DNA from: Lytechinus pictus
Taxonomy: Eukaryota
Reading direction: 5' to 3'
Length of the DNA stretch: 64,000 nucleotides
Assembly (NCBI RefSeq): GCF_037042905.1
Contig: NC_087263.1
Span: 2,046,001-2,110,000 of the forward strand
Below the pieces are notes generated by a model. That model searched no databases. It was given only the letters and a program-made list of their open reading frames with translations, and had not been told where the DNA came from. Each line of letters starts with the position of its first letter. Position 1 is the stretch's first letter. This document shows, in pieces, positions 28,501 to 59,500 of the stretch. A program made the position numbers and the translations under genes.

Positions 28501-29739
28501 TTCTTGACCTCTCCTGACAATCAAGCAAGGGTTTCCACTCGCGTCCTGTTCAAACTCATCGGTATGATGTGCTTTCGCATTTTCTAATTCCTAAGGATCA
28601 TTAAGGACATAGAGAAAGCAGGGAGTCATGTTCAGTTTACATCGGTCTAATCTACCTTCCTAATGAACCTGACATGTATTACAAACTAAAAAAAAAAGAG
28701 ATAGATTCCCGTATGATGGATCAAAATCGGACAATAACCTTGAATTTAATTGTGTGATTGGGTTTAATTATGAAGCATAATGCGGACCTTGGTATTGCAA
28801 CAACACCACTACCATTCTCATTCTAATGGGCGCAACAACAACATATCAATAATACATGATGATGTTGATAATGATGATGACGGTGATGATGTTGGTGTTT
28901 ATGCTTAAAACTTAGTCATTACCGGCACCACCATCATCAAAACCATATTCTTATTATTATTCTCGTTTATTTGGTTTTTTTTCTTTCCTCCTCCTACCCC
29001 TTATCAATCTTTATCATTATTAACCACGTCATCATCATTATCATTATCACTATCTTAATTATTATCTAATTTTTATCATTTTTGCTGATGTCATTTTAAT
29101 CAATTGAGTAATAAGATAACAATAAAATGAACAAATTCGCTTTTACAGGAGTTTGCTACATCTGTTGCAATGATCATTTATTTCAAATTCATCGCACGCC
29201 ATTACAAGCATATATATACTTACAAATAGATTAACCCCAGTAACGGAGAGTGATGGCAGATTGGAGAGATCAGGGGCCGCAGGAGCTGGAACAGGAGCAG
29301 GGGTCGATTCGGAGGCATTGGCAGGGGCTGGTTCAGGCTTCGCAGCTGGATCGCTTTCCGCCACAGCAGGATCCGATTCTCCTGGAGATGGATCCACTGT
29401 CTCTTCCACTGGGGGCATATTAGCTCCACCAGCTCCTCCACTGGCTGCAGAATCAGCAGCTGTACCCGGGTCTTCCGTAGGTGCTGTTCCACCTCCATCC
29501 TCCCCGGCTACCTCAGGTCCAGGAGACATAGGGGAAGTATCCGCAGGAGGAGCATCATCACCAGCATCCCCTTCATCATCGGAATCGAATCCTAGTTCCA
29601 TGGAGCTGAAGTTGATCTCAAACCACTCCCATCCTGTTTTCTTGGGGTCTGAAGAAGAGGAGCTCCGTCCATCACCTGATCTGTTGACTGTACCGGCCGG
29701 AGCTTGGCCGGAACTTGATCGGCTTGAACCTGAACCCAT
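19579..29739 (-). CDS. TGM: Transglutaminase TG-A (protein-glutamine gamma-glutamyltransferase), 12 coding exons, 856 aa
   Basis: Exons 29739-29224, 28590-28425, 27926-27814, 27385-27044, 26746-26583, 25100-24820, 24456-24384, 23271-23075, 22616-22392, 21656-21502, 20760-20567, 19723-19579. Total 2571 nt, GT-AG, in phase. Motifs [33 protein letters not shown] (Cys), WNFHVWNE (His), [11 protein letters not shown] (Asp), [27 protein letters not shown]. Confidence 0.95.
20920..21200 (-). mobile_element. tRNA-derived SINE in a TG-A intron
   Basis: Degenerate A/B boxes (GGTTCAAATCCC), same core and tail as the other copies. Confidence 0.7.
21819..22264. repeat. Long inverted repeat in a TG-A intron (arms of about 158 bp, spacer of about 130 bp)
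   Basis: 21819-21976 is the near-perfect reverse complement of 22106-22264. Confidence 0.9.
24481..24634. mobile_element. Palindromic PIF/Harbinger-like MITE next to a TG-A acceptor
   Basis: GGGCCTGTTGCATAAAACTTTTTACCTGAGAAAACTC / GAGTTTTCTCAGGTAAAAAGTTTTATGCAACGGGCCC. Other short-TIR MITEs at 23624-23788, 23790-24053, 25144-25272, 43585-43755, 55377-55525 and 57450-57690. Confidence 0.7.
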
Positions 29740-30314
29740 CGTTGAAAATCTTTGAAAGGAGAAATATATTCTTAATCAAAGCACACGACCATCCCTTTAA
29801 ATAATTACTTTTTGGAACGTCTACTTTGATAAGATGCAATAGACAGCATTTTACTGACATTGAACTGATGACGGTAGGCCCCAGAGGCGGATCCAGGATT
29901 TTCCCAAAGGGGCACATGAAAATTTGACAAGCAAAAAAAATATATAAATATATATTTTTTTACCTAAAATTGAAGGTCATTTCGCTCGCGGAAAATTTGA
30001 CAAGCCAAAAAAAATGTAATCAAACTCAAAAGGGGGCACACTTGGGTAGAAACGGTATATTATTTACATTACAAATTTCGATTATGTCTGTCAAAAGGGG
30101 AGCACGCCCCCCCCCCCCCCCCCCATCCCTGGATCCGCCATTGGTAGGCCCTACAAGTTATTCTACTTTTCCTTCTGCAACGATAATGTTAACACTTTAC
30201 CTCACTTGTTAGTAATGGTAATGGAAGTAATCAAACCTATATACTAACCGATACGAGTAGAGAGGAATAATAAAACTCACATTATTGTTACGAACATAAA
30301 ATTGCGGTACTTAC

Positions 30315-30480
30315 ATTTTATTTGCAGAAACCAGTTAAAAGCAAGAAATCCATGTGATGATTGTTGTTTACTATGTGTTACTACTAGGCGATTGTAAACA
30401 GGAGACCGTGACAACTCGACCAACCAATCATTCACCCCATCAAAACCTGGACCAATTCGTCCATGTCCGAAGTGGAACCG
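30315..30480 (-). other. Candidate non-coding 5' exon of TG-A
   Basis: Strong minus-strand donor gtaagt at 30314-30309. The ATG exon begins at an acceptor (29750-29751), so an upstream exon is required. The 5' boundary is unknown. Confidence 0.4.
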
Positions 30481-31685
30481 AATGTACTCTGTGTTTTCTC
30501 ATTGCCTTATATCATGTTTTGAAACTTAAAATTAATGTGTCTCATCATAATTACGCATGACAAGGGACTAGAAATCATGATCTGTCTAACTTTCATTCAT
30601 TGAAAATATTGTTTTGTTTATATTTGAACCATAGGTTATATTGGATTCGACCTTGCGGAAAGGCCGAAGTTTCTATGAGCGAGTTGGCAGCCAACCCATG
30701 ACTGGCCACTCGCACGTTGAATTGTGTCTTTTCAAAGAAATCCAATGGCCTCCTTCCTTTTGGTGTAAGAGAAAATCGATTTCTATTGAAAGGACAAATC
30801 TGTCAATAAAGGTACCCCTTTTAGGATCAGCGGTGAAGTCGAGGCATGCGTAGGAGAGGAGTTTGAGCACCCATGCGTAGTTGACAGACGAGATATCAAC
30901 TCAACAATGTGTTTGTTTTTGATTGACGACATCGAATGATGATAAAGGAGTGAGTATATAAATGGAAAAATGTATGGATGAATATTGATTCATTGGTAAA
31001 TATGACCATTATATTATTGATTAGAGTATTTTTTTTCTTAATTTGGAAAGTATTGATCAGCCAGATATTTCGAACTTTCAAATCCCACTCACAATGTGCC
31101 ATATTATAACCTTAATGAGAGAAGTGGCATATTATAATTAAGGAGGCCGTGATTCGAACATATTAGATGCTATCCTAAAAATCATCGAGCATACATGGCA
31201 CAATGACCCTAATTGGAAATAAGCCATATCGGCTTATTGGGCTCTCCTGTCAAGGTATTTCCATACGTTAGTTACACTTCCACCTGTTGTATCATACATG
31301 AAAAATCAAATCGAATCAATCAATCTACCTTGGGCTCTTCAAAGTGTGTCCCGGTTGCCTAAATTTTATTTTCTTGGCTGTTTGAATTTGAATCAAGAGA
31401 AATACTGACAGAGGCGTTCGGATGCCAATGGGATTCTTCGCACGGCCGGTACGTACGATGCATACGACTTTAAGAACGACTGGTAAACCTTTCTGACCCT
31501 CTAAATAATACTAATGAACATTTAATAGTGAGTATCATTTACCACACACAAGAACAGATCACCAATCGTTCTTAAATTCACTCTTAACTTACGAACGACC
31601 CCCTGTAAATCTTATCAACAGTAGCAATTATTAAAATATATTTCATGGTTAAATGAACCACCATAAGCCACAATTAACCAAGTTA

Positions 31686-31750
31686 TTGTTACCTCTCGCT
31701 TGGCGTCCCGTTGCCATAGCTACATAACGCGTTGCCGGTAAACAACGGAG
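31686..31750 (-). promoter_or_regulatory. X-box-like element upstream of TG-A
   Basis: GTTACC at 31688, then GCGTCCC-GTTGCCATAGCTAC (X-box at 31710-31723), with the same 22-bp spacing as TG-B/C. Further GTTGCC at 31731 and forkhead-like GTAAACA at about 31738. Confidence 0.5.
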
Positions 31751-32083
31751 TTGGTTGCCGACCTCTATTATATATGTGCAATCATAGGAAAATAACAGAT
31801 AACTATCACACTATTATTTCGATATTCAACTTGGACGGAAAATAGGCCTAATCTCAAGAAAAAATATACGACAGCATATAGTTTTTTCTATTCATATGGG
31901 GCTGAAATATGACTGAGTTCTTTTTTACAGAGGTTGGGTGCTGAAAATTTTTTAATCAAATGCAAATCAAATTGATTATGGAGATAAAGTTGTTTTGAAA
32001 TTGTATAAAATTTTTATCTCCATCGCCCCAAGGAACGTGATGGTGGGATGAAAACAATGGCGGTAAATTTATGACCTGGTTAC

Positions 32084-32507: not shown

Positions 32508-32624
32508 CTGGTTGCGACCCCCTTTGGCACTATTTATCTGCTTTATTTTTATAATTTATTGTTTACACAGATGACTTATCGATCATCGGCAGGTCGGTCG
32601 CTGGCTGGTCATACATTATCTCCT

Positions 32625-33865
32625 TTATCATCATCACCATCGTCGTCGTTACCATGATTATAATAACCATCACCGTCTACATCATCATCATCACCATCAT
32701 CATCATCGCCATATCACCATCGTTATAATCCCCATCACCATCATCATTATCATCTCCATTGCCATCATAATCACAACCGTTACCATCTTCATATAAAGCA
32801 TCATTACTGTCAAAATCATCATCACTGTTATCATCNNNNNNNNNNNNNNNNNNNNNNNNNNNNNNNNNNNNNNNNNNNNNNNNNNNNNNNNNNNNNNNNN
32901 NNNNNNNNNNNNNNNNNNNNNNNNNNNNNNNNNNNNNNNNNNNNNNNNNNNNNNNNNNNNNNNNNNNNNNNNNNNNNNNNNNNNNNNNNNNNNNNNNNNN
33001 NNNNNNNNNNNNNNNNNNNNNNNNNNNNNNNNNNNNNNNNNNNNNNNNNNNNNNNNNNNNNNNNNNNNNNNNNNNNNNNNNNNNNNNNTATCATAATCAT
33101 CATCAACAACATCATCACCGTCACCATTATCATCCCCATCGCCATAATAACCATCACCGTCATCATCATTATACNNNNNNNNNNNNNNNNNNNNNNNNNN
33201 NNNNNNNNNNNNNNNNNNNNNNNNNNNNNNNNNNNNNNNNNNNNNNNNNNNNNNNNNNNNNNNNNNNNNNNNNNNNNNNNNNNNNNNNNNNNNNNNNNNN
33301 NNNNNNNNNNNNNNNNNNNNNNNNNNNNNNNNNNNNNNNNNNNNNNNNNNNNNNNNNNNNNNNNNNNNNNNNNNNNNNCATCGCCATAATAACCATCACC
33401 GTCATCATCATTATANNNNNNNNNNNNNNNNNNNNNNNNNNNNNNNNNNNNNNNNNNNNNNNNNNNNNNNNNNNNNNNNNNNNNNNNNNNNNNNNNNNNN
33501 NNNNNNNNNNNNNNNNNNNNNNNNNNNNNNNNNNNNNNNNNNNNNNNNNNNNNNNNNCATCGCCATAATAACCATCACCGTCATCATCATTATANNNNNN
33601 NNNNNNNNNNNNNNNNNNNNNNNNNNNNNNNNNNNNNNNNNNNNNNNNNNNNNNNNNNNNNNNNNNNNNNNNNNNNNNNNNNNNNNNNNNNNNNNNNNNN
33701 NNNNNNNNNNNNNNNNNNNNNNNNNNNNNNNNNNNNCATCGCCATAATAACCATCACCGTCATCATCATTATACTAGTAATTACCATTACCGTCATCATC
33801 ATCATCATCATCTCCATCCCCATCATCACCATCCTCTTCCTCATCATCATCATTATCATCATCAT
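32625..33865. repeat. (CAT)n micro/minisatellite, poorly assembled (several N gaps)
   Basis: The same 37-mer recurs between N-runs. Confidence 0.9.
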
Positions 33866-35584: not shown

Positions 35585-38500
35585 CTAGACTTCTACTTTG
35601 ACCGAGCCAGTGACGTCCTTGATTAGGTTTGTATCGAGTTCGACGATCACCGTCTTACGTCCAGACGATCTCGATGGGAATCGGATTTCTCTCTCGATCA
35701 TCTCGTTAGGTTCAATATCCCTGAATCAAAAGGTAAATTATGACGTGTTTTGATTTAAAAAGAAAATGGAAAATATATTCATTACCGCTAGAAAATATTT
35801 CTGATATAATAATAACACAGCAGCAACAACATTAATAATAATAATAGTAAGAAGAAGAAGAAGAATAAAAAAAAAACGAAGAAGTAGAATTATAATATCA
35901 CCACTTTTCTTTTCTATGTTATTACATGAAGTGATAACTATTTCATTTCTTCATACATAATGTGTAAATATTATATCTCTCTCAGTATGCAGCAATACTT
36001 ATCTTATATATAAAATCAGTTGTCAGCCCATTTTGTTTTCAGTCTTGGCAGAGAGAATAATGTAATTTCATGTATGAATAACATAGAAAAGATTAAATGG
36101 GGATATGGCATCATCAATTCGCTCACAACATATTTATGAAGACATTCATGGAAATGTTTCATCGAAATAATGCAAAACTTCGAAATGTCATATCTTTGTT
36201 ATTCCCTGTCCGATATTGATTAAAATTGCATTGTTTTGTTTGTCTGATTTTACCTATCTGTTTAAATCATATGGTCTTCTGCCTGGTGTACTCATTTGAT
36301 ATGCCAGCTGGCTTGCTATGTGGCGTGCTAACGGGAGGGCTTGGGGACTCTTGCTCCCCCCCCAAAAAAAAAAAAATAATAATAATAATAATAATAAATG
36401 AATAAATAAATGAAAAAAAATAAAATAAATCACGACCAAGAAAAAAAAAGAGAAAAGGAAAGAGAGATAGGTGTAATAAAATATTATTTTCTGGATATGA
36501 TGTCAAAATCTAACACAAAATTTGATATTTTTTAAATAAAAAAAAATGTTTGCTCGCTTGCTTCGCTCACTTGATTAGTTTTTTTTTACGCGATATGCCA
36601 TATCCAACCCCTTAAAAAAAATGGCTCATTACGCCACGGCTTGCTACTCACTCCGTGTTGACACTGAAAGGTCTGACGAGCTTTGGTGCTTCGACAGTAA
36701 ATGTACAACCAGTCAGGCGTTTATTCAGAGGATTCTTGAACTTAACCGTCAGTTTGACCTCTTTCCCATTGACGTCACCTTTGACCTCGAGGTCAGGCTG
36801 CTTGAACCTGAAAATCTCCTTACAGATAACTGGAGTTTTGCTGCCCTAGACGGATCAAAATAAATAGAAAGTAATAATAATCAACCACTGCGCAACTAAT
36901 ATGGATACAAACATAGAACAAAAAAAAATACCCATCAATCAAAATAGTTTAACTTTCCATAAGCAGGAGAAAGACAAGCAAAGGAAATGCGAAAAGGGCT
37001 TCATTCTTTCCTCTCTTGTTTTGTTTGTCTTTTCTTTCCTGTTTTATCATTTTCTTTCCCCTTCTTCCTTTTCGCTTTATATCGTGATCAATTATTTGCT
37101 ACATATTATTTAAATAACTTAAACTGTATAAATACATAAATCGAACCTTGACAGTCGCGATTGCTCTGACTTGAAACATTCCTTCATCATCAAGCTTATC
37201 CCCATAATCCTCTTCGTATGTGAGATGAATTGACTGGCTTATGCTTTCCTTGTCATTAACGATATATTTCATTTCATCTTTTTTGATAATGTCCTTCGGC
37301 AAACCTGTAGGGAGATGACGATTCGGGGAAATAAGACACAGAAATACAGAGAAAGAGAGGGAGGGAGAGAAGGGGGAAGAGGAAAGGGATTACTTCTGAT
37401 TTCCATGAAAATCATGAAAAATTACAATATTCATAAATAATTATCGCTCGATCAGAGTTCAAAATCACAGAAAAAAAAGAAAAAATTAATTATGAAAAAT
37501 TGCAGAGCAAATACTAAAGCATGCTAATGATTGTTTATCGTCGGAGGCAACCTTTGTTGCCATGGTTACAGGCCACACCTTCAAGCTTACCTGTGTAAAG
37601 AATACTTCTAATCTCTATATCAAGCTCAATCTCCTTTGGATACTCAAACTCATTTTTCGTTTCAACCTGGACACTGGCGGACTTTCCGATCCACAGGTCA
37701 TCCTAGTGTTAGAAATAAAGAGAAAGATACAGAAAAAGAAGCATAAATGATTATAAAGCAATATTCAGAAACTACACTCTTAAAACAAATCAGTCAAATT
37801 GACTAGACAAGTAGTCAGCTGGGTGCAACTGATATGCTAGTTACATTTCTGACATACATTCTACTTAGAAATAACTCTTTTCTAGTAAAATACGACTAGA
37901 AAAATAGTCAAATATGACTATAATAACAGTTGCACCCAGCTGACCCTATTAACTAGTCATTTTTGACTGATTTTTTTAGAGTGTAGGGTGTTAGAATTTA
38001 TACCAGGTGGTGTCCCTAAAGGAACACACCCTTAAAGTGAAGGAATTATACTCTAAAGTGGTTTAAACATATCAAAGAAAGTGTTGAAGTAATAACATGG
38101 GTATTTTGAACATGCTAAACACGCCCATGCCACTAATATAAGTATAATATTGACCACGTAAGTGACTCGTATTCTCATTGGTACTAGGTCATATTATCAT
38201 CTTGAAGGTATACAAATTTCAAAAGTTTAAGAATTTTCCACAGGACACGGCAGTGTCTTTTTATAACCCGACAAAATATACAAAAATTCGTAAATTCTTC
38301 TTACGAATGACTTGGAAATTGCACGGCAGCATACAACACAAATCGTAAATTGACCGTACGTCTGACGAAAGAACAGCTGCAATTCTTACCATTGCTTACG
38401 AAAGACGTAATAATTTTATGGCCATTCTATAACAGAAAATCATTTTGTTTCTTAAGACGGACTTTATCTATTCTTGCGATTTAAACAGCATTCGCGCGAA

Positions 38501-41500
38501 TCTGTAAGAACTCCCTAATTCGTAAGAACTGTCAGATTCATTCGAGCGCATCGTTCGTACGAATCTTCGTGACCATAGCTTACTTTGTGCTTAATCAGTC
38601 AAATGCAAGGATTTCAATTAGCGTAGAACAGCAGTCAGTGAAAATAAGTGTTTTGTTCACTTGTTAAAAAATCGCCATATTGTTATTTCATCCTTTACCT
38701 TGCATTCGATAGCCAATGATACAAGTTCGGGTTTATCATCTGCGTCGTAAAGGCCGCGGTTGATCCCCATGCTGACCGCTCTTTCAACCGCAGCGCGTTC
38801 CTCGGGAGAGCCTAAACATCGGAGAAACGAGGGGTAAAGCCTTGTAATTTTTATCTTAATTCATTGATTAATCTATTTATTCATTGTGATATTTATTTGT
38901 TTATTTATTTCTTACTTTATTATTTTGCATTCATTTATCATTTAATTCATTTATTATTTTGTCACGTTACTGTTTTGTCATGCTTGTGAAGATCGAATCA
39001 AGCTCAAATTTTCAATCATATATTCATCACAAATCGTCAAATTGATTTTTGATAAGGCAACGGGCGAATACTGTAAAACCATTGAGAAAGACGCTCAAAA
39101 CTTTTGAAGTCCATCCTAAAATTATGGGAAGCCGAATATTGTAAAAATTTTGTTTAAATTCATGTTCCATATTGTAATAAGTGCACTTTCGTCATGCTAT
39201 ATAATAACGAAAAAAAAAAACATTTCTTTGTCATTCCTTAACAGTTGAACAGATGAGCTGATAAAAGCAACATGCCACGGTCATGACGGTTAGAGATTTG
39301 TATCACAATAAGCTTTCTTTAATTAAACCAATACTTGAGACCAGAGCACCGAATGAATTTTGCAGCTCCCATATGATTCGTACAGGGACATCCCCGCTCT
39401 AACAGGCTATGGTTTAATCAAACCCAGGTTCACAATAATAGCGTTTCTGAATCCCGGATTGCTCAATGATTTGTCTGAAGGCAAATGTGAAGATAAATGA
39501 TGGTAAACTGCCGATAGTCTATTGCCAACTCGTCCACTCATCGCATGGTCTAACTGCATTTAGTCTAATGCCATTCAGTCCATCAACATTTCGTCTAACA
39601 GCCATTTGGTCCAATAACCATAATCACTTCGTTTTATCACCAATTCGTCTATAAACATTTCGTCTAATAGCCAGTTGGTCTAATACCCATTTTATTTTAA
39701 TTAATTTTGCCTATTAACACTTATTCCAGTTAGACCGAATGGTATAGAGACTAAATGGCTATTGGACCAATGCGTTATCAGACGAAATGGTAATTACATG
39801 TGGATAGTGGACACGCATGATACCCATTTTGTCAATGGAAGTGCCCCCCCCCCCCCCGCCAGGGATTATACCTTCTGAATATTTGTAGTCCAGTGTGACG
39901 TCATTTCTCTCAGCATACCTAAGATCGGGATCGGATCCTACTTTCAACGTACTAATCTTCTTGCCCACGGTGTTTCTGTGACGTGACAGTAGCGTGTAGA
40001 TTAATGAGTGCCGATGAGTCCGGTACGGGGTCACGAGCCATCTTGCCTCGTCAGCATTCACCTCAGCGAAAACAAATCTTGAAGTGAGAGGAAATAGAAA
40101 GACTGATGATGATTCAGTGTGATCGACACAGTAAATTGCCAATTCGTCTACTGCCAACTCGTCCACTCACCAAATGGTCTACTTTCATTTAGTCTAATGC
40201 CATTCCGTCCACCAACATTTCGTCTAACAACCATTTGGTCCAAGAACCATTTGGTCAAATCATCACATCGTCTAATCACCTTTTCCTCTAAGACCATTTC
40301 GTCTCACAACCAGTGAATACTTGCATTTCTAGGAATACGCAAGAAGACGAAATCAAGATACATAAAACGAATGTCAAAGTCAAAATGAATATAGAACAGT
40401 GGTGTGAGTTTGTGATAGAATGTAACGGTAAACTTAGCTTAAGTACGAAAATGATTTAGAGAGCCATGACAATAGGGAGTATTAGCTTTCACCAAGCACG
40501 ACGGATTCAAGAACATAGAAAATGAATTGCCAAATGCCCTTCATGGCAAAGCACAGCCATTAAGTCTTTATCGAAAATCGGTGAATCAAAACCGCAGTTT
40601 CGGACAACCATGACATACTTGTAAGTTTTCGTCAGATCCGAAACTTAGGACAAACTGTTGTTCTTGTCACTTTACGGGCATTTTAAATACAGATACTTTG
40701 TTCTTGAATCTGTCCCTGTTGCAGTTGCAACAACTCTCTACTGATGCTCATCTAAAAGGGGAAATTGCTGATTCTTCCACTGCCAACTCGTCTACTCACC
40801 ACATGGTCTACCTACATTTAGTCTAATGCCATTCCGTCCATATCAACATTCGTCTAACAACCATTTGGTCCAATCATCACTTCGTCTAATCACCAGTTCG
40901 TCTATGACGATTTTGTCTCATAACCAGTTGGTCTAATATTGGTTTTACTTTCATTCATTTTGCCCAATTAGACCTAGTCTCAGAGCAAATTTTTATTGGG
41001 CCAACTGGTTATTCGACGAAATGGTGAGTGGACGAAATTGCAATTAGACAATGTGGATATTGGACGAGCTGATGGTAGACCAAATGATAGTAGACGAGTT
41101 GGCAATTGGACGAATTGGCATTGGACGAAATGAAAATAAACCATTTAAAGGAACTGTGTATTTTGAGCATGGTGGGGTTGCTTACCCTGAATCATAAGGT
41201 ATGTCCACGATTCCGCGTTTTATCGCCTTTACTGGGGCCGGACCGCACTGGTATATACCTAAAAGATATATGTTTATATATATTTATTTACATATTTTTA
41301 GACAACGTAAAAAAAGTGAACAATGAAACATCCAACGATTACATAGAGTAAAAAAAAAAGCACTGAAATATGTGACGGGTTATTATAATAATGATATACA
41401 GACATCATGGACATGACAGAGGGCATTCGGCAGCTTGCAACTTCCAGAGCAGCTCAAATCGCCACTATTTCCCCCTCTCTATCTTCTGTATACTCGCCCC

Positions 41501-44500
41501 TTAAAGGTACAGCAGACTTGGTACAGTGGAATGGGAAAAATCCTCTGTACTTAAAATAATGTTCATGATTGATGTGCCTATTTGCATTCCCGGGCTGATT
41601 TTATACATACGCATGCAAGAGTGATTATATCGCGTGGATTTTACTTCCACCCTTTGATAATTCGACAACGGCGACCTAAACCACTGCTGTTGCTGCACCA
41701 ACAAAATATTGAAATACAATCATGACAATGAATACCACTCCATATAAAGGAACGGTGATCCTAAATGGCGCGATGGCAAGATACTAGGTAGATTTCGCAT
41801 TTACTTCGGGGAAACTCTCTACAACGCATCGATTCCTTTGAAAATGTAATTAAAATCACAATGGAGAGCTGAAAAGCTTTTGTCGAAAGTTGGCTTCCTG
41901 GGGCAGATCATCCGAAGATTTGCACCGGACGAACACTTGCAAATATGTCTTTGTCTAGAGTCAAGAGATTCATATGCTGTCCCAGTCCACCAACTTTCGA
42001 TACAAACCACTCAACTCTCCGTTGTGATTTAACTTGCATTTTAAAAGGGATTGGTGCGTTGAGAGTTTCTCCGTAGTAAATGCGAAAAGTCCAGAGTATA
42101 TCATAAGAAAGTATGGAGTTTCCGCACCATGACGTACGTCGGATTGAAGAACGAAGAAAATCTACATGTATTGTCAAATGCCCTTCATCAAGAGCAACCA
42201 AGAAATCTTTGTCGAAATTTGGTAAATCATATAAGCAGTTTCGTTCTTGACTCTAGGCTAAAACAATTTTCGTCAGCTCCGAAAATTAGGACGAAGCTAC
42301 TGTTCCGGTTCAGCACTTTACGACAAATAACTTTTTCACTGTCTTTGTCATTTGGCGCTTGTTCTCAGTACATTTACATTTTTCTTGAAACCGTTGTACA
42401 TCGCGAAGCAAAAACTCTGCAAGTCGACGGTGTGAAAGGGGTCTAGCCAAGTAGGCGTTTATGTGTCGTCATGGTGAATTGGCATTGTCGCAGAGATGAT
42501 ATTGAGTCAGAGACTTAGAGCGAGAAGCGTTATTTCGGCATATTCGGTATGCCAACTTACAAATTCATTTTTGGCGATATGATGCACCTACTGAGTTGAC
42601 TTGATTAAACCAATATCTTGCCATATCATCAATGCCATCTTAAACAATAATGCCAATAAGCCATGGTGACGCTTCGTGAACCAAAGAAATGAATCACATA
42701 CCACCGCTCATCTCTTGTGGAGTTGAATCGACGACTTGCCAGCCGTCAAAGTCTTCGTCTAGCCCATGCAGGTCTTTTCTCGTCATCCATGATTCGTTCC
42801 AAACGTGGAAATTCCAGATAGAATCCCTCCCAGTCCTTTCGCCATCGTTTCCACTCCGACCGTAGAAAAATTCATCCTTCAGCGACTTCCCCTTGCTGTC
42901 CACGTACTCGTCTATCGTCTTGTTCCTCTCGGTGTCATGGGCAGAGTCAAAGTTGGTGACGCTACGGGTTGGTATCCCAACGCAGCGAAGGAACGTGGTA
43001 AGGAGTCCTGAGAAAACCCAGCATTGGCCGTATCTGTGAACATACAGAAGTAGGTTTTTCATAAGATATCTTTTTAGCAAGTATGAAACTGTAACATCTA
43101 TATCAAACAGACTGGTTCGTAATCTGCTTTCTATTGAAAGCCACAGTATTGCTGGCCACCAAGCACATATAAAGTGTGGTTATAACTTTATTTGTAAAAA
43201 ATCTTGAAAATTATACATACATAGGACTAAATGTGATGCTATGAGCTGAGCGTTCATGCGGATTTAATTTTCCATGAATTTTCACCCAGGGATTGTGACA
43301 TTTTTTTTTAGAATGACACATCCATGCCTATGGTACTGAGAACCAATACATTTGTGTGTAGTATTGGATTTTGTAGCTCGAGTGAAACAAGTTAATATTA
43401 CAAGATGTAAAGTTAGATAAAAGGCGAGATACAAGAGTTTCCTTGACAACACTTTTTTTCCGGATTGCTAAGTTTTGAGTGAACCCAAAATTCATACTTG
43501 CTTTCCCGTTATTCTTGAAAGCTCTCGCGGAATTTTTTTTCTACTTTCAATAAAGCATTTGTGTCGGTCATCATTATTGACCAGTGGGTGTTTCCTAAAG
43601 CTGTTCCAAAAGTTACGAACATCGTTACGCACGACTGGAACATGTTCTTAGGTCATAAACTCAATTACATATGGATATCACATAGCACAAGAAAGTATCA
43701 CCAGTCGTGCGTAAAGTCATTCGTATCTTACGAACAGCTTTATGAAACACCCACCAGTTCTTACAAGTTACATATCATTTTAAAGCTAAGGGTATTTCTT
43801 TTCAAGCTTGATGAAAATGTCGGGGGAATTGTTGGTTTTGAGATGGCTTTTAATACATGCTAGTGATATTGGTAGGTAAAACACAACTTAATCAGACAGC
43901 CGTTAATGTGTGTCAGATATTTGTTTCAATGAAGGGGAGGAATAAGCACTCGGCCACTCCAACCGATCTGCCCTTTCCTTTTTTCAGTCCACGTTCACCG
44001 ATCAGTATAATCATATATACATGTAATTTCAAGCGAGTACGGGCAAAATGGTTACAATGCCGTTAGTAAGGAATTTGTCCTAAAGATAATGTCTTGAAAG
44101 CTCCTACTGAGACGAATATGAGAATTGTAAGCCCTAATCGCAGTAATAGCTAAGTAAAGAAAGTCCTATTTTGTTTCATTCCAATTCATATCCTTATATA
44201 TAATGTCTTGCCCCTGGTCTAAAATCGTGCGTTACACTATTAAATACATCAAAATCAAACAAAGAACATTCAAGCGTGCATTTGCTTCTGTAGGAGCCTA
44301 TCCCCCCTTTTTTTTTTGGGGGGGGGGTAAACTAAAGAAGGAGTGTACTCTTACTTAACGGGTTCTTTGGTGTTTCCATACTCTTCAATTATCCTCACAC
44401 TGCCTGTCCATCTAGTGGGACGCGTACCACCCTCGTAATTGCCACTCCAGTTTCCTAATAAGACCTTCGCATAGATGATATTGGTGAACCACCTTGACAC

Positions 44501-46697
44501 CCTGGCCGCACTTTCCCTGTCTTGGGGAAGTCGTATCTCCTCCTCCATGAGCTCAAGGACCACTCGATAGACGTCAATGTCAAATTGTCCAAATGTCCAA
44601 GCCGTTGATCGGTTGCTAAACGCACTGCCTCTCCAAATCGCCCCGGTGTCTGCCATGACGTATTCTTCTCGCTCGGCCCTGTTTTCCATATACACTGTAT
44701 CCTTTTCGCACCAAGGGTTGAAGAGAACTATGATGTTTTTATCTTGAGGGAATAACCTCTCAATTCGACTCGCACGACTTTCCACCTTGACAAAGAACTT
44801 ATATGTCCCGACAATGGCATTGGGGGCGCTGTTCACCATGACCTTGATGGAGTTGCCTTCGGCTGACTCCAGCTTTGCGCTCCAGCTGCCCTCTTTGTAC
44901 GTGCCTTCGATGTCCAAATCGATAAGAGTGCCATCCATTGGCCGGGGGGTCTTGACTGCAAGAAAATCAACATAGACTTCACATCAGATATTTTTTAACA
45001 ATTGGGCATCGTGCATTAAACCATAGACAGTTTCTTTTAATATCACAATCGCTTATATTTTTTGATCACCCCTCCATTTGCAAGCGCTCTCACATTATCG
45101 ATCTTTAAGTACCCTCTTCTCTCCTTGTTACCTTTTTTACATTTCCTCACTTTATGTCCACTGTTTATTCGTGTTTAACCCTTTGGACTTTTGTAAATTT
45201 TTAGATATTTTCATTGAGTATTACATCAATCATAAATAACGTAAAAAGGAAGAAAGTTATGGCGTTATATAGTTTTACTACAATCCCATAACAGGATATA
45301 CGCAGCAAACATTATATTCAAATAAGTAAACGGTAATATTACCGTCTATACGTATTCATGTTGTTTGTATACCGCCATACGCTAACTATTTTCGTGTACT
45401 GTTTCGTCTGAATTAAGATGTATTTCATTTTCTCCAGAAGATGTTGTAATTATGAAATTGACTGATATCGTCATGACACCATTGTAATCTTAATTCAATG
45501 CAATAAAGGCTATCTTTATATTTATAAAAATCTTGGAACAAAATGAATGGTGTTTGTGTGTCTGCACGTACCACTTGCAACGGTAAACTGAAGGAACAGC
45601 CTTTCCCTCTTTGGCTTGAAAGGCCTGTTGAGATGGAGGTCGATTTGAAACTCCTGACCGCGTCTTAAGATGACGCCTATAGATTCGTCATTTTCGTACT
45701 CATCGGTGTGATGCATGGAACCATTGGAATTACGCTATAAATGAACGAAATGGGAGAAGAATAAACATCAATTTCAATTACTGTCATTTATGGAACGCAT
45801 ATCGAATAGGTGAGCAAGAACAATTCATGAACAAGAAGAAGTAAGCGAATCTGGCCAATTAATTCACAAGCGTGATAGACTGTCATCTGGAATGAATAAT
45901 GAATAAACACATTAGTGACATTTCCATATAGCTTCTTCTTGTTTAAAAACATTTTAGGAGGAGTTTATCAATTTCTTTCCGTGACACTGGAATCCCATAT
46001 TAACACCTCAGTTACATGTATATAGGTATAGCTTTATCTTATATGTCAAACTGTTCAATTGGTCAAAACCTTACATTGAGATCGACATCGGTGACCTTGA
46101 GGGATGATATCCGAGGTGCGGGGGGATGTTCTCCGCTAGAATTACCCCTATTGGTTGGTATTCCTGTATCAAAAACAACATTTAGAAGAACTATAATTTA
46201 TTCACAAAAAACGAAATTGACAGTAATGGTGTAAATACGAGGAGCAAATATTCCTAGTTATGAATTTGAATCGGTGTTTAGATTCATTGGCGTTCGTGAC
46301 AACCTAGTAAAGAGCATTGCAAACATTTCAGGTTTCAAGAAAATGTAACTTGTCTATAGGTGTGAAATTCAATCAACAATGATTGAAAATCTCCCTCCCA
46401 TGAGTGGATTATTCACTCGTAATTTTTTAAGATAGTACCTGATCCACCGGCTCCTGCTGCGGCATCTTCTCCTCCTTCTGGTACAGGACTTTCGTCAACA
46501 TCCTCCTCCTCAAGCTCTTCTGGCGGTGGGAGACTGTTTATCCAATTGCGAAGCCACTCTGAAAAAAGATCATCGGTTGAACGCCCTCCTGGCCCTCCTC
46601 CTCCTCGGACACTGTCAGTTCTTCCGTCACTCCTCACTCCTCCTCCTGTTCCTCCTCTTGCACTGCCTCTCCCTCCCCTGCTTGTACCGGTACCCAT
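35585..46697 (-). CDS. TGM: Transglutaminase TG-B, 12 coding exons, 811 aa
   Basis: Exons 46697-46439, 46163-46075, 45734-45572, 44955-44355, 43033-42702, 41258-41186, 40077-39872, 38811-38699, 37702-37591, 37304-37147, 36845-36652, 35720-35585. Total 2436 nt, in phase. Motifs [45 protein letters not shown]. Confidence 0.95.
41792..42089. mobile_element. Second copy of the 300-bp foldback MITE (TG-B intron)
   Basis: Collinear reverse complement of 17984-18286. Confidence 0.85.
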
Positions 46698-47319
46698 ACT
46701 GAAATTGAAAAAAGCATCAGAGCTCAAGAGTATGATATAGTGTTTGTGTATATATATATATTTATAGGCCTATAATAACAAGCAATATTCACAATCAAAT
46801 GAAAGTTTCTCTGCATTGGTGAAATGAGGTTTTTTTCTTAAAGGTTTCTTCTTACACAATCATCTAGTGAATGAATATCAAAAAAGTATTTACCTGCCTA
46901 GCACCTTCCCTGATGTTTTCGTCAAATTATGAGAGAAAGAAAGACATTTCATGAAGTTTTGAAATAAGTTTGTTTTAAATGAATGTTTTACAGCTTAAAT
47001 TTCACGATTTCACAACGTTAAGTTAATGTAACTTTGGCAAAAACAAGCTGCTGAAAACAGCTTATCTAATAAAAGAGAGCCAATGGAGTAGATTAGAAAG
47101 TCAAAAGGGGCCTAAGCTTTCGATCCTAGCAGAATCTTCGTCGGAGGCATAATGTAACTTTACCAGATCTAGATCCAAGATGGCAGTAACTTTTCAGCTC
47201 TATGCCTATTTGACGTTTCTCTAATTATTCTAATAAACTCTTCTTGGGATGGAGTTTCCCTCTAAACATGCTAAACCTCATCTTGGAACTTACGGTGGCG
47301 TTTGAGAGTGGGTCTAATC

Positions 47320-47980
47320 ATGGACCTATTACAAATACCCCATGGACATCGACCTGGACATCCCAACCCTTCGGACATCAACCCTCCGCACATCTACATG
47401 TTTTTCTCTGGACATCCATCCTCCGGACAATTAGGGCCTACCCCTAGGGTGATATTCTAGGATAAGTACCCCTTAGGACAACTACTCTAAATGATAAATT
47501 CCCCCAGGCATGATTCACCCCGGATAATTTAACCTCGGACATTTACCATGGACAGCTCGTCCATGGTCTAATAGTGTTCGGATGTTTCGACTGTGGTTTG
47601 ACCATGGACCTATTACCATGCACACGAGGGTAGACAATGGTAGGTGTCAGGGGAAAGCTGTCCTAAAATATCACCCTAGGGGTAGGCCCTAATTGTCCGG
47701 AGGATGGATGTCCAGAGAAAACATGTAGATGTGCGGAGGGTGGATATCCGAAGGGTCGGGATGTCCAGGTCGATGTCCAGGGGGTATAGGTCCTGGGGTA
47801 GATGACCGGGTTAGATGTCCGATGATGGATGTCCAGGGATGGCTGTCCAAGGGGTAGATATCCTGCGGGGCCGTAATCCTATATAGGGCCTAGGGTGATT
47901 GTCCTACTAGGGTTTACTTATCCTAGTTACCCTACCTTGTCCAGAGGGTGGATGCCCAGGGGTAGATGTCCTAGAACCGT
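47320..47980. repeat. GGACAT/CCC-subrepeat element with an internal inverted repeat of about 128 bp, upstream of the TG-B ATG exon
   Basis: 47335-47462 is the reverse complement of 47661-47787; subrepeats continue to about 47980. Confidence 0.8.
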
Positions 47981-48479
47981 TCGGCAGGGCACCACGTACT
48001 GTACACACACACACACTACCCCGCACACACGAGCACATCCTAGCACACTGCCAACATACACCTGCTCACACACACACACACCTCCACACACACACCCATT
48101 AATTTACTATCGCTGACACACAAACACACGCACACTCACTTCATCGAAGAAGACGCGCACACATATTTGAAAGGCACCTCCAGAACTTGTGTTCGTAAAT
48201 AATTTGTGTTCAAATACATGCTTGCTTTGTGAAAAGTTCCATAAAAATTGCATACGGTAAAATGAAAACATTTCCCTACACAATTATCATTCAAGTTGGA
48301 GTAGATGTATATATTTAAAAAAAAACTTACATTGCACTCCCAGACAAAATCCCGCAGAACGCTCACTATTCCACAGTCGTTTGTTTATCAAAATAAAATC
48401 AGGAGGTCACGTGCACTAAGTAGATAATGTATGATAGCTAACACATTAGTCCACCCACGATGCCTTTACTTGATGTTAA

Positions 48480-48668
48480 GCGCAGCTGCTATATGAAACA
48501 AACCCTATCCAAAAATATACCTTTCCGATCTATACAATATATGCCATTATCAATAATAACCTTTCAATTTGTTCATAATGGCGAAGGCCGATTCGCCACA
48601 AACATCAAGTTCATTTAGATTGTTGCTATGAATGCGCGTCCCCGTTGCCAAGTGTAGATGGAAGACTC
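48480..48668 (-). promoter_or_regulatory. Putative TG-B promoter: conserved element with RFX X-box-like sites and a TATAGCAG box
   Basis: Aligns in inverted orientation to 50373-50580. 48591-48656 is 58/66 identical to the TG-C copy. GTTGCT at 48622 and GTTGCC at 48644. Candidate 5'UTR donor (gtaagt, minus strand) at 48330. Confidence 0.65.
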
Positions 48669-49737
48669 GGGCTGATTAGCCTAACTGAATACATCACATT
48701 ATTATTATTTCATGCCAGCAGTCTGATGTTACTGTATGTTATCACGTGGGACGGGGGTATGTGTATGTGCCGAGTGAATGGGGGAGATTTTCACTGGAAT
48801 AATATATTATATCTCTACTGATATATAATAAATATGGTTAGGAAGATATAATGATAGTAAAACCATATTAGCGAGCGAGAATCTAGATAGGGGTCTCTTG
48901 GGGGTACGACGTGTCCCCATTCATACTAAAGTGGTACCCTGCACACAATATATACACCCCCCCTTGAAGCAATCATCTTAATTGATCCCTGCAATAATAA
49001 TAATAATAATTATATAGGGTATTTATATTGCGCACATATCCACCTTGTTATGTGCTCAAGGCGCTCCTATATTACCCGGCTAAGCTGTATTGAGTAAGCA
49101 CCCATTTTGTTCATGGTGATAGGATGGTATGGGATCAGAGAGAGAGAGAGAGGAAGAGAGAGAGAGAGAGAGAGGGGGGGGGAGAAGGGAGAAAGATCAT
49201 ATCTATCTATAAACATATTGACTTTCGACAATACATTACCATGGTGCAAGGTCATATAACCTGAATAAACACAATAATATTCAGAAGCTGTCTTACCCTT
49301 CGATTACTATACGTGATATAGGCACAGCAGCGATGGTATCACCCCCCTGAAGTGTATGCATCCATTTCTAAGCGCCCCCCCCCCTCTCCCGTCCATGCAG
49401 GGTCTGAATACATTTGGTAGGCCTATACATGTATTATGGATATCAGGAAACCCCGATTCGAAACGAACTTATCTATTATTAGAGAAGTCCTTTATCCGTC
49501 TCTCATCATATTTCTAGGTTAGAAACATGAAAGACAATAGCTTTAATATAAATCGCTCATCAACCCCCCCCCCCCCACTCACCCCTCTCTTTGTCTGGAT
49601 ATCCTAATTCTTACTCCCATCTCTGTGCTACTATTGCTTTTATTTTACCCTCCTCCCCTTCCCCTCATCTCCCCCTCTGTCTCTTGGTCTCTCTTCTCTG
49701 CCAATAAATTGTCCTTCAGAGTTATTATCCCCATACC

Positions 49738-49980
49738 ACTGGCGGATCCAGGCCGGCCCGTGCCCCCTCCCCCCCTTTGAGAAGCAAAATTAAAATTTGT
49801 GATGTAAAAATGTCATTTGAACAGAGGTGTTTCCCTCTTTTTCTTTGCTTGTCAATTTTTTCGGGTACGAAGTAATCTTAATTTTTTGTTAACCTTTATT
49901 CTATTTATTCTGGGGGGCTTGTCAAAATTTTCCTCCGAAAAAATGGGTCCCCATTTTGGAAAATCCTGGATCCGCCCCTG
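49738..49980. mobile_element. GGCGGATCCAGG-terminated MITE
   Basis: CTGGCGGATCCAGG...CCTGGATCCGCCCCTG. Another copy at 29882-30143. Confidence 0.7.
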
Positions 49981-50372
49981 CCCCATACCCTTACCTATCA
50001 TTCTCAAACTATAACATATCAAACACCATTTCACTAATTCTCTTCAGTTTTCATCAGAAGGCTTCTATTTTTGACTCATTACATCTCTTGCACACTATCC
50101 CGGACCAACTACCATCCATCTCCACTGTTTCTCCGTGTACAATACTCACTCACACACTATACCTTCTTCCAGGGTTTTGATGTTGTGGCTGTTGCTGTTG
50201 TTAATTAATCTTTGAATGTTACCCCTGGCCCACCCCCCACCCCCCCCCCCCCCCCCCCCATCCTCCAGGCTGTAATACCCAGCATGCACGTGATCTCTCT
50301 CGCGTGATGCCTTAGCCCTGACAGGACAAAATCTAATGTTATGATTCACTCATTGTCGTCTGCGTCTATTCT

Positions 50373-50580
50373 GAGGCTCCCCCAATTACACTTCGCAACG
50401 GGGACGCGCTTCCATAGCAACAACCCAAATGAACTTGGTGTTGGTAGCGAATGCGTTTTTTTTTTTCGCCAATGTGCACAAATTGAACGCTCATATTGAT
50501 AATGATAGCATTGATTGTATGAGCGAGAATTGTTTTTTTTTTTCATATCAGGTTTTATGTTGTATTATAGCAGGTGAACT
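50373..50580 (+). promoter_or_regulatory. Putative TG-C promoter: paralogous copy of the TG-B element
   Basis: Reverse complement reads TTGTTGCTATGGAAGCGCGTCCCCGTTGCGAAGTGTA. TATTATAGCAGGTG near 50563. Candidate non-coding first exon ending at the donor gtaagt at 50740. Confidence 0.65.
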
Positions 50581-55310: not shown

Positions 55311-56557
55311 TGTTACCAGTTGCTAAGGACACATTAGTTGTTTGAGTTCTGTGTTGATGGATACAACATAATATAATGGCGCAGTCACATTTCCCCCGAC
55401 GACGGCCGTACGAAGAGTCGAAAACAGCCGGTTTATTGATTTATTTTTTCAAACCACCTATATGTATCTGGTACAAATAATGTTTAAACGGCTGTTTTCG
55501 ATCGTAGGGGGAATGTAACTGCAGCATCAGCTAGCCAGTGCACTTGACTCACTAACGCAACAAGCACACAAATTAAAAGGACCCCAAACCGACCGATGGT
55601 ATTCCATTGATTATAACGTTTTAACTTTGGTCTGCCTGGTGTCCGTTGTGTCAGTGTGACATGGGCATATCACCGCGCTGCTGCAGGAATTATGTGGAAA
55701 TAATTGATTGAGAAATAGCTCGCTGATTATTCACCCTTTTGAATGTGCTCCGTGATTGCCATGTTTATCCGGAGAATGTCGAACCAGATCAAGCGGATTC
55801 AAGAGAATGATAGAGAAAGGGAGGGAGATAAAGGGCCGGGGCGCTCTAAATCTTTGTTTTTGTATATTAAAACATAGCATATGGCGGCATATCAGCTACA
55901 TGGCTTTTCTATGCTTTCCGTCCGCCTAATTTCGAGGTAGACCTTTCTGCAGAGGTTCCTTTGACATCAGGGGGGGGGGGGGGGGCTAGGAGGCAATGGA
56001 CCCCCCCAAAAAAAAATAATAAAAAAAAAAATTAATAAAAAATGGTAATGATGATAATAATCACCACCAAGAAAAAAAGGATATTTTGGAAGACCATGAA
56101 GGAGAAAATGGATTACATGATATATATATTTTTTTTAATATTATCATGTCAAAATCTATTACAAATTTAGATGTTTGTGTTAGAAATGTGAAAAAAGTTA
56201 TCAAGTTTTTTGCTTGGTCGCAACATTTTTTTTACAAATAAGTCTCTCAATATGAGAGTTTCAGTTTTAGATTCAGCTTCATATAATTTCTCATTTATCA
56301 TAGTACAAAATACGAACGAATTCAACATAGTTAAGAAAGACAGTTTAGAAAGACATCAAATGATGCATACATAAACGCAGCATGTGGATAATACATTTAA
56401 AAAGGAGGGGTGGAATGACAGGATATCAACCCAAACCCCCTGCCTAAACAATGTTCAGAAAAAAAATGACAGCGAATTACTAGATTAGTAATACCGTGGA
56501 CCTACTACAGTAGTAGGTCCATGGTAATACCAATGCATTCTATTTTTTTCCACCAGT

Positions 56558-59500
56558 ATGGGCACCGGGACTAGCAAGGGGAGAAGAGCGGAAGGAAGCG
56601 GGCATAGCGGAGGAGGAGGAGGAGAAGGAGGTGGTCATGGTGGTGGAGGTGGAGGAGGAGGTGGATATGGTAGCGAACGGCCGACTGATGACATCTATTC
56701 AGAGTGGCTGATCTCGTGGATGAATCACTTAGGGCCTGTGGAGACCTTTGAAGAGGAGAACGATTTAGACGACGATCCCGTACCTGACGGGGGAGAAGGC
56801 GGAGGAGGAGCTGAAGGAGGAGGAGCAGCAGCAGCAGGAGGAGGAGATGGAGAGGCAGCAGGATCGGGTGGAACAGGTATGATCATCATGTTATTGAAAT
56901 ATCTTTTATACAGTAATAGAGCAACATAATAAATACGGAATACATTTACTTTGAAACACACTGCACTTTTGAAGACATTCATTCCTCAGACTAAAATCTT
57001 GTATTAAATAGATATGTCACACTTTCAGAAGACACGATTTGAGGACCTCACAAATAGGTTTTTGCAAGACATTTCTGCATTTATGGAGACAATCAAATAT
57101 AAGAATATAATGTTAACGTTACAAAATTGATTTAAAGAGGCGTGTGACAATTAATGATAACCTAATTCATATCAAAATCAACATCATATAAAAACGAATT
57201 AGATTACAAATCAATTGAATAAAAAGACAAATGCAGAGGAAGTAGCCTAATTTTTTATTGACCAGTTCGGTTTGGTTGCTATTTTTATGATAATTTCTAA
57301 CGGGGGGGGGGGGGGGTCGTCAGTGGCTTGAGGTATTCCTAACGAAAGATCATGTATTCATTACATACCCATTGAAAATGTTTTTTAGTCTTCTTTGGAA
57401 GACCCCCCCCCCCCCCCTCCAGTTATGGCCGCCATAAGTTGCGGTGATCTGGGCCCCGTCTTACAAACAATTACGATTGACATGATTGATCCAGTGCACT
57501 ACAACTATGGAAGCCAGCAACGCCAACATCTAAGATACATGTTTGTTCGAAATAGTTTCTGGATATATTCATACAATCATAGTTTTCTTGAAAACTCAGT
57601 GTGCTTCTTTTTGTTACAAAGGACATTAATGTGTAAATTTCCTGACGAAAATATTATGACGTTAATGGATTTCCATGTACTTGAGGTTGATCGGATCGGA
57701 GAGCTAGAAATTAAAGCAGAAGAAAAGTTCCTTGTACATGTAACCGTCATTTTTATAGCAATAAATCCCCACTATTAGTACTTTTCAATAATGAGAATGA
57801 ACCTGTCCCTGTGTATGCATACTGAATGGTATTGTTCATACAGGAGAAACTCCAGCTGCAGGTGGAAATGCAGGCGGGGGACAACCGGAGCGTCCAAAGG
57901 TGTCATCGCTCAAGATTACCGGTGTTGAACTCAATGTAAGATAAAGTTCGTTGTTAACACCATCATTTTAAGTTGAAGTTATCGACATGGTGAAATTTCA
58001 TTTAGTAATTTACTGAATAAAATGATTAATATTTATATCGGTCTTATGCATTTGAGTTGCACAGTTTGAAATGCCAAGTTAATCAATTTCTAGATTGTTA
58101 AGAAACATTATCTAACATCGCTGGGTATACTTATATTTTTCCTCTTCAATATCGGATCTTGTATTCCTCCTTTTAGCACTTATTCTTTGCATGTGCAGAT
58201 TTGCTTTGAACGCGTGTGTAAAAATACAGCCCATTAAAACATTTCATTTTATTATTATTATCACCATTATTATCATCATCATTATTATCAATATTATCAT
58301 TATTATTAATATTATCATCATCATCATCAACACCACAATTAAGAAAAAAAGGGGACGGGTACAAGAATCAGTCTTAGGATATTTGTCTCGGATTTTCACC
58401 ATTTGAATTGTTTGGTGCTTCGAATTCATGGTGTACCGTGAATAATATGTTTTGATTCTCTCTCTGCCATTCGAACCTAAAATGATATTGCATATTTAAA
58501 AAAAATGCATGTCAACGGCTGCAATGAACTATATGATTGGGAACACAGTTAATTGTCTCTTGCTTACCTTTATTCTCTTTATTTGTTTATTCGCTCTCTG
58601 CCTTTGAAACCTTAAATGATATTTCATACAAAAAATGCTAATCATGAGCTCCAATTAGGAATGACTGTTGCTTACTTTTTTCTTTGGATTTCTAGTCAAG
58701 TTCTAATGGCTTCTTGCACATGACGGATGAGTATGAATATGACGATAAAACCGGTCGAGAACTCATCATCCGGAGGGGCCAGGAGTTCAAAATAGACATC
58801 AACCTGAGCAGACCATTCAAACCAAACAAGGAACGCATCATCCTCCAGCTAACAGCTTCTGGTAAACATCAATCTACAGTCCATTATCAGAGTCTTTCTT
58901 TCTTTCTTTTTCTTATGCGTCTCTCCTTTTTAGGATATTGATCAGTGTAAAATATAAGTTTTGATCATGTGAAATATGAAGACTTCGCAAAGGCTCGAGG
59001 TCAGGTTCGAGGCAAATAATAATTTAGTCTACACATAATTGTATAACTCTTAGCTGTTCGATCAGCATTCATTAGTGTTAGTATGGTGTTTTCCTATCCA
59101 ATGCTGAATTATAGAAACAATAAAAATTATAATGATCGTGGTTGTTCTTTTGCAGCCAAGTGTCCAAGACCAACGGACGGTACTGTCATAAATCTGGACA
59201 TCAACGGCACGTACAAAGACGAAAATTGGAGCGCTAAGATGGAATCCTCCGAAGACAAATCCATCAAGGTCACAGTGAACAGCGCCCCCAATGCTATAGT
59301 CGGCACTTACAAGGTAACTGTCAAAGTCGAAAATAGCGCCAATGGAATGGAGACGGTGTTCCCTCAAGCGAGAAAGGTCTGGCTTCTCTTCAACCCATGG
59401 TGCAAACAAGATGCAGTGTACATGGAAGACAAGGCCGAACGAGATGAGTACGTCATGGCTGACACGGGAAGAATCTGGAGAGGCAGTGAGCGGAACAACC

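Follow-up and report, generated by a model that had tools for sequence, protein, structure and literature searches.

The window analysed here, a 64,000-nucleotide stretch of the genome of the sea urchin Lytechinus pictus (C19:2046001-2110000), carries three annotated transglutaminase (TG) genes, TG-A, TG-B, and TG-C, which were assigned by exact matches to NCBI models (Table 1). A fourth paralog, TG-D (P0171, XP_054775150, 798 aa), lies about 100 kb to the right, outside the window, at C19:2204763-2212176. All 811 residues of the TG-B model are placed on window DNA at 96-100% identity. Exon 7 of TG-C spans base 64000, five further exons lie beyond it, and the gene ends about 3.9 kb past the window; its model, P0286, matches the window plus the adjoining downstream DNA at 93-100% identity. 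We describe the N-terminal motif shared by the four proteins and the X-box-like motif found upstream of their genes, a 14-bp motif of the kind that marks the promoters of ciliary targets of RFX factors, and we ask how far the two support a ciliary role.

Table 1. Features of the window, with positions counted from its first nucleotide
Feature	Position	Strand	Details
GGT (gamma-glutamyltranspeptidase) gene	about 3964-12900 (about 4-13 kb)	plus	
TG-A coding region	19582..29739	minus	~12 exons; P0169 = XP_063969739.1, 856 aa; tblastn mapping
TG-A catalytic-core exon	24818-25099	minus	
TG-A open reading frame	29143-29739	minus	ATG at 29739
TG-A codons 1-6	29722..29739	minus	MGSGSS; N-myristoylation consensus, small residues at positions 3-5
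TG-A upstream element	31686..31760	minus	four GTTRCC half-sites (31688, 31710, 31731, 31754), 21-23 nt spacing, one strand
Four assembly gaps (N runs)	32836..33736		between last TG-B exon (35588) and TG-A upstream element (31686-31760)
TG-B coding region	35588..46697	minus	12 coding exons; P0168 = XP_063970039.1, 811 aa
TG-B catalytic-core exon	42697-43035	minus	
TG-B ATG exon	46698-46438	minus	ATG at 46697
TG-B intron 1	46699..48330	minus	1632 nt, GT..AG; between non-coding first exon and ATG exon
TG-B non-coding first exon	48331..48554	minus	at least 224 nt; 5' end may lie slightly further upstream
TG-B proximal promoter element	48511..48661	minus	GGCAAC 48644-48649; AGCAAC 48622-48627; X-box-like 14-mer 48622-48635 (GCATTCATAGCAAC, 1 mismatch)
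TG-C proximal promoter element	50382..50541	plus	CGCAAC 50394-50399; X-box-like 14-mer 50408-50421 (GCTTCCATAGCAAC); CCAAT ~45 nt downstream
TG-C coding region	56558..64000, cut by window end	plus	first 6.5 of 12 coding exons; P0286, 827 aa
TG-C exon 1	56558-56878	plus	MGTGTSKG
TG-C catalytic-core exon	60568-60903	plus	

The four genes encode classical TGs. Exon translations match the Pfam domains Transglut_N and Transglut_core, and the full models (P0167-P0171) contain PF00868, PF01841, and PF00927. Residues 108-810 of TG-B align end to end with factor XIII-A, the best match (E=4e-115), and also with the TGM3 and TGM2 structures, all of which share the catalytic motifs of the urchin proteins. 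All four paralogs have these Cys-His-Asp triad motifs (GQCWVF, [FY]HxWNE, and WQxVDxTPQ), which align with the active-site motifs of factor XIII-A. No signal peptide, hydrophobic N-terminus, or transmembrane segment was found in TG-A to TG-D, the maximum Kyte-Doolittle value over the first 80 residues being ≤0.67 in a 12-residue window. An earlier first-pass annotation of this DNA had described three catalytically intact TG paralogs without a signal peptide, and that description is sound. Judging by these motifs, TG-A to TG-D would be catalytically competent, with a predicted Ca2+-dependent transamidase activity.

All four proteins start MG[ST]G[ST]S (MGSGSS in TG-A, MGTGTS in TG-B and TG-C, MGSGTS in TG-D), in agreement with what had been claimed for the three genes in the window. 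The N-myristoyltransferase consensus that we used, PS00008, G-{EDRKHPFYW}-x(2)-[STAGCN]-{P}, is matched at Gly2 in each of them (GSGSSR, GTGTSR, GTGTSK, and GSGTSL), and Gly2 is most likely N-myristoylated in TG-A to TG-D to judge from this match. Five residues, M1, G2, G4, S6, and a single Trp, do not vary (8/8) across an alignment of eight N-terminal extensions, taken from orthologs and paralogs in five echinoids: L. pictus, L. variegatus, S. purpuratus, and two species of Diadema. The remainder of the extension, which spans ~110-170 residues and is without counterpart in the solved TG structures, is low-complexity and divergent. The invariant Trp sits in an 'EW..F/I' motif that is followed by an acidic run and is conserved in all paralogs and species, and the extensions of TG-B and TG-C contain Arg-Gly-rich tracts. 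Because the urchin TGs have no Cys within the first 20 residues, a second, palmitoyl anchor is unlikely.

We know of no requirement of N-myristoyltransferase for a glycine at position 4, and the invariance of G4 appears, to our knowledge, to go beyond the needs of that enzyme. In the UNC119A-specific cargo motif, the myristoylation consensus is combined with small or medium residues at positions 3, 4, and 5; the motif is common to cystin, NPHP3, and GNAT1 and also to the immune-synapse proteins LCK and FMNL1, and the G4Q substitution lowers the affinity of LCK (Stephen et al., PMC6179904). All four urchin TGs fit this motif, with S-G-S, T-G-T, or S-G-T at positions 3-5, and the L. pictus genome contains two GMP_PDE_delta genes (UNC119/PDE6-delta type). 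The likeness of the urchin TGs to the UNC119/ARL3 cargoes cystin, NPHP3, GNAT1, LCK, and FMNL1 is at the level of the motif only. The first-pass annotation had read these N-termini as a signal for UNC119-dependent sorting into cilia; they do fit the published cargo motif, but the motif itself is not cilium-specific, being carried also by LCK and FMNL1.

In a maximum-likelihood tree, TG-A, TG-B, TG-C, and TG-D form a single echinoid-specific clade (100/100), of which TG-D, present in Diadema, is the first branch. TG-B and TG-C are camarodont-only, the tree holding no B/C-type gene from Diadema, and the B/C split is older than the divergence of L. pictus and L. variegatus. The sister clade in echinoids, the 'K-like' TGs, is without the MG start, which recurs in TGs of a hemichordate, two starfish, and a brittle star, and in annulin-like proteins of arthropods and molluscs. 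The Gly2 myristoylation consensus is present in 37 of 233 near-full-length TG homologs, and this count, together with the spread over several phyla, makes the Gly2 lipid-anchor motif old and widespread and not new to this locus.

Leaderless, N-acylated TGs are indeed already known from Drosophila TG-A and grasshopper annulin, which have, like the urchin proteins, classical TG domains, no signal peptide, a Gly2 consensus, and an N-terminal extension ahead of the beta-sandwich. The urchin TGs differ from these in having Ser or Thr, not Cys, at positions 3 and 5, in being without a palmitoylation site, and in forming a separate echinoid clade. Vertebrate TGM1 is also lipid-anchored via an N-terminal extension, as predicted for the urchin TGs, but the chemistry is unlike, the anchor of TGM1 being formed by thioester acylation of a Cys cluster. 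To call the cluster an undescribed system was therefore an overreach: the genes were already annotated, and the kind of protein was already known. What is new is a conserved X-box promoter together with a cargo-type N-terminus, which is not yet a new system.

The promoter element is clearest in TG-B and TG-C. Positions 48511-48656 on the minus strand align with 50387-50541 on the plus strand over 157 nt at 76% identity (E=3e-24), so that the copies are inverted to each other while having the same orientation relative to their own gene. Both a 126-nt query and a composite pattern find just these two copies in the 812-Mb genome. S. purpuratus has two copies upstream of a B/C-type gene, with 94% identity to the L. 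pictus element over 50 nt, and blastn detected no trace of the element in Diadema. A near-invariant 47-nt core, CACTT-xGCAAC-GGGGACGCGC-xTxCATAGCAAC-AAxCxAAATGAAC, is better conserved than the neighbouring coding exon, which has ~68% protein identity between L. pictus and S. purpuratus. The two S. purpuratus copies (3702-3751 and 5510-5606 of the S. purpuratus locus) are 1.8 kb apart and point the same way. They lie 4.4-6.3 kb upstream of their B/C-type TG gene, of which only fragments are annotated, and the doubled element could be a pair of alternative promoters or what is left of a second gene.

Transcript contigs place the element at the start of transcription. Two Logan contigs (1470 and 1575 nt; studies X1 and X11) join 48554-48331 to 46698-46438 across intron 1 of TG-B, whose ATG exon starts one base ahead of the ATG. 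The paired sites of TG-B (48649-48622) lie ~70-95 nt upstream of the 5'-most contig base, and TG-C contigs start at 50493, 72 nt past the second site, a position homologous to that in TG-B. Given these contig 5' ends and the spliced non-coding exon, the element comprises the proximal promoter and the start of exon 1. Intron 1 of TG-B also contains a foldback repeat at 47335-47787, with nested inverted repeats (47335-47462 and 47661-47787) whose 61-70 nt arms are 94-98% complementary, looking like a foldback or miniature inverted-repeat transposable element (MITE) insertion.

According to the first-pass annotation, all three genes shared an upstream element with paired GTTRCY sites. The shared element is real for TG-B and TG-C, whereas TG-A has in common with it only a core of ~35 nt, made up of GGCAACGGGACGC, 8-9 nt, and GGTAACAA. 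Two sites are present in the promoter, but they are direct repeats and not a palindromic pair, and the first site of TG-C reads GTTGCG, one base off the pattern.

We scored sites against GTHNYYATRRNAAC, which we take to be the C. elegans X-box consensus. The second site of TG-C, GCTTCCATAGCAAC, is identical in both S. purpuratus copies and differs from this consensus by one mismatch, as does the second site of TG-B, GCATTCATAGCAAC. In TG-A, only one of the four half-sites, which are spaced by about two helical turns, belongs to a full X-box: the 14-mer at 31710-31723 (GTAGCTATGGCAAC) meets the consensus throughout. A GTAAGT donor ~100 nt downstream of the TG-A element suggests that a 5' untranslated exon may follow it. 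TG-D has a perfect palindromic X-box, GTTGCCATGACAAC, at -3204 from the ATG, with a CCAAT box ~50 nt later, and a CCAAT box likewise follows the X-box-like motif in TG-B and TG-C.

Comparison between species and between paralogs singles out the same motif. The TG-D ortholog of Diadema setosum has a perfect X-box, GTTGCCATGGAAAC, at -3315 from the ATG, and this is the longest conserved run in the pairwise alignment. Upstream of the Diadema TG-A ortholog, at ~5.1 kb, TTAGCCATGGCAAC is one base off the consensus and forms the best-conserved block. An alignment of B/C-type with D-type promoters leaves the X-box as essentially the sole block in common. In L. pictus, the X-box regions of TG-A and TG-D each occur once. 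What speaks most strongly for the X-box is this single-copy context, along with the nearly equal distance from the ATG in the two TG-D orthologs. A transposon origin of the promoter elements was considered and ruled out by these copy numbers, one for each of the TG-A and TG-D regions and two for the B/C element.

Genes for proteins with RFX DNA-binding domains are encoded in the L. pictus genome. In Drosophila, an X-box found in one species was not predictive, whereas conserved X-boxes did predict RFX targets (16 of the 25 that were tested; Laurençon et al., PMC2375033). The TG-C and S. purpuratus site fits the search consensus of that study, GYTDYY N2 RRNRAC, and the TG-D sites fit its restricted form, GYTRYY N2 RRHRAC. 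Promoters with two RFX sites are known in C. elegans (PMC3245922). The TG promoters resemble those of RFX ciliary targets in having a 14-bp motif conserved between species, which in TG-B and TG-C lies, with one mismatch, ~70 nt upstream of the contig 5' ends; they differ from such targets in that the paired sites of TG-B and TG-C are direct repeats 22 nt apart, and in that the enzymes are not known as components of cilia.

Several observations weigh against this interpretation. The sites of TG-B and TG-C carry GC, not GT, so that a C stands at the strongly conserved second base, and the TG-B site is also off at base 3 by the Drosophila consensus. In S. purpuratus, the 10 kb upstream of TG-A hold nothing that matches the L. 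pictus TG-A element, only a site with one mismatch at -82. The orthologous X-boxes were found by a motif scan followed by alignment around them, a procedure biased toward finding them, and the distances given for TG-A and TG-D count from the ATG and not from a transcript start. The window holds 85 GTTRCY hexamers where 94 are expected, which is no enrichment, and an X-box match with at most one mismatch turns up in it every 2.4 kb or so. Genome-wide, the perfect X-box has 40,701 strand matches and the reversed pattern 9,447, a 4.3-fold excess.

This excess arises because repeats and transposons carry X-boxes, and a match alone is therefore weak evidence. A perfect palindromic X-box in a TG-A intron (GTTACCATAGTAAC, 23690-23703) lies inside a ~160-nt repeat for which the genome holds over 3000 candidate copies (88-93% identity). 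For the strict palindrome GTTRCYNNRGYAAC with at most one mismatch, the window holds 4 matches where 1.2 are expected, one of them at a promoter. An apparent locus-specific excess of perfect X-boxes (5, against 0.53 in shuffles) was rejected, the genome average being ~3.2 per 64 kb. Two further perfect matches in the window are GTAACCATGGCAAC at 37556-37569, 20-33 nt into the intron after TG-B coding exon 9 and beside, but outside, a moderately repeated segment, and one at 2570-2583, ~1.4 kb upstream of the first coding open reading frame of the GGT gene. As a practical warning, only X-box sites that are single copy and conserved between species carry weight in L. pictus.

The same data may be read without RFX. 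The promoter core would then bind other factors, such as a Myb-like protein at the CAACGG inside GCAACGGGG, a protein recognizing the GC-rich GACGCGC, and NF-Y at CCAAT, and the genes would be expressed in non-ciliated cells, for example in coelomocytes, where a role in clotting may be envisaged, or in oocytes. Such a reading draws on the conservation of the entire 47-nt core in TG-B, TG-C, and S. purpuratus, well beyond its X-box-like part, on the lack of half-site enrichment in the window and the transposon-driven excess across the genome, and on relatives that have been named automatically 'hemocyte' TG and 'coagulation factor XIII-like', which are names only. It does not account for the X-box block being the one that aligns on its own between B/C-type and D-type promoters, nor for TG-D, whose perfect palindromic X-box has stayed about equally far from the ATG in two species that parted early in the echinoid radiation. 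We regard it as rather unlikely. The RFX reading offered by the first-pass annotation holds to the extent that a conserved X-box-like motif sits in a single-copy proximal promoter; it is weakened by the X-boxes in repeats, and binding of RFX to the sites is a prediction from the sequence. We consider RFX-type control of the TG genes plausible, with slightly less than an even chance of being correct.

Expression data bear on where the enzymes might act. TG-B and TG-C exons have zero depth in two deep raw L. pictus RNA-seq runs (X14 and X15; ~6% of each run was read; tissue given as a code), a further point against the RFX-driven picture as a whole; with regard to a ciliary role, zero depth in two raw runs is neither for nor against. 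Transcript contigs of TG-B and TG-C occur in two other studies at low depth. RNA-read pile-ups on short stretches (46900-47299 and 48900-49099) run on into unlike sequence and thus represent repeats transcribed elsewhere. A weak marker of the ciliary band in larval single-cell data from S. purpuratus is 'Sp-TransglutL / etg' (SPU_005702), whose fold change of 0.29 is similar to those of its neighbours in the table, enkurin (0.35) and Armc4 (0.33) (PMC8683087). Like eTG/nTG of the same species (Wong and Wessel 2009), it is a sea-urchin TG; it was not matched to any of the A-D paralogs, and our homolog searches returned no protein so named. In Ciona, a TG is listed in branchial cilia and not in sperm flagella, as a 2D-gel spot specific to branchial cilia (PMC4427456). 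Both of these observations bear on the urchin genes only indirectly. The text of a sea-urchin cilia proteome preprint makes no mention of TGs, and we found no TG evidence in two other sea-urchin single-cell papers. The lipid-anchor signal and the RFX-type promoter motif make a link to ciliated cells plausible; an enrichment of the TGs in such cells is an idea that we hold tentatively, leaning against it.

An alternative destination is the cell surface. The TGs may be matrix cross-linkers that use their myristoyl anchor for unconventional export in vesicles, a route reported for Drosophila TG-A, and that harden the fertilization envelope, the hyaline layer, or cuticle-like coats; RFX would then act on the X-box outside a ciliary setting, or the motif would be irrelevant. 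TGs need high Ca2+, which sea water would supply and the cytosol would not, and the zero expression in two RNA runs fits use restricted to a stage or tissue. Arthropod annulin-type TGs start MGN[AC]xSS with a nearby Cys, the TG-A pattern, and the export of Drosophila TG-A uses a second, palmitoyl acylation. The urchin proteins, having no N-terminal Cys, would be without the palmitoylation on which that route draws, and export to the matrix leaves both the invariant G4 and the conserved X-box unexplained. TG activity at the egg surface is needed for assembly of the S. purpuratus fertilization envelope (PMC2115685). Weighing these points, we judge a matrix function improbable, but not to be neglected.

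The remaining features of the window concern the history and assembly of the locus. The adjacency of GGT and TG-A is also present in S. purpuratus. One large exon in TG-B (44354-44959) and in TG-C (59152-59754) corresponds to three exons of TG-A (27951-26582), and in TG-D a 915-nt exon spans residues 168-472; this pattern of exon fusion across the family indicates stepwise intron loss. A repeat is common to the region upstream of TG-A (29882-30100) and the intergenic region between TG-B and TG-C (49771-49980). The N runs are flanked by ATC/ATCATCACC microsatellites and are intergenic. No exon, splice junction, reading frame, or promoter element touches them, all TG-A, TG-B, and TG-C exons having been mapped, and only the length of the spacer between TG-B and TG-A is left uncertain by the gaps.

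We propose that the locus holds a tandem, echinoid-specific clade of classical animal TGs that would be made in the cytosol without a signal peptide. Myristate on Gly2 would tether the cross-linking enzyme to the cytoplasmic face of membranes, an arrangement resembling insect annulin/TG-A and, in function, vertebrate TGM1. Each gene would be transcribed from a single-copy promoter, which in TG-B is shown by the contigs to lead into a non-coding exon 1 that is joined by splicing to the exon with the ATG. The X-box-like motif, ~70 nt upstream of the transcript start and the most deeply conserved block of the promoter, would make RFX-type control, with NF-Y, the likeliest. From there, a UNC119-type carrier might deliver the proteins to the plasma or ciliary membrane, or they might be released to the cell surface. 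For this explanation as a whole, a clade of leaderless, lipid-tethered TGs with RFX-type promoters, we see the chances as evenly balanced.

Whether the enzymes end up in cilia is a separate matter. Localisation of the TGs to cilia is speculative on present indications, and we think it unlikely. In the full ciliary scenario, RFX would drive the echinoid MG-clade TGs and UNC119 would carry the enzymes to the membrane or compartment of cilia in motile-ciliated epithelia such as the ciliary band, or in sperm, where they would cross-link or polyaminate axonemal or membrane-skeleton proteins; to this scenario, too, we assign a low probability.

A dedicated ciliary TG, if true, would be a role not established for the TG family. 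Should the readings of both RFX control and UNC119 carriage be correct, covalent cross-linking or polyamination of proteins would be added to the modifications already known to stabilise cilia, and four tractable genes for its study would be at hand in L. pictus, which lends itself to genetics. Even without cilia, a lipid-anchor motif and a 14-bp promoter motif have outlasted several gene duplications in this family while the surrounding coding and non-coding DNA diverged.

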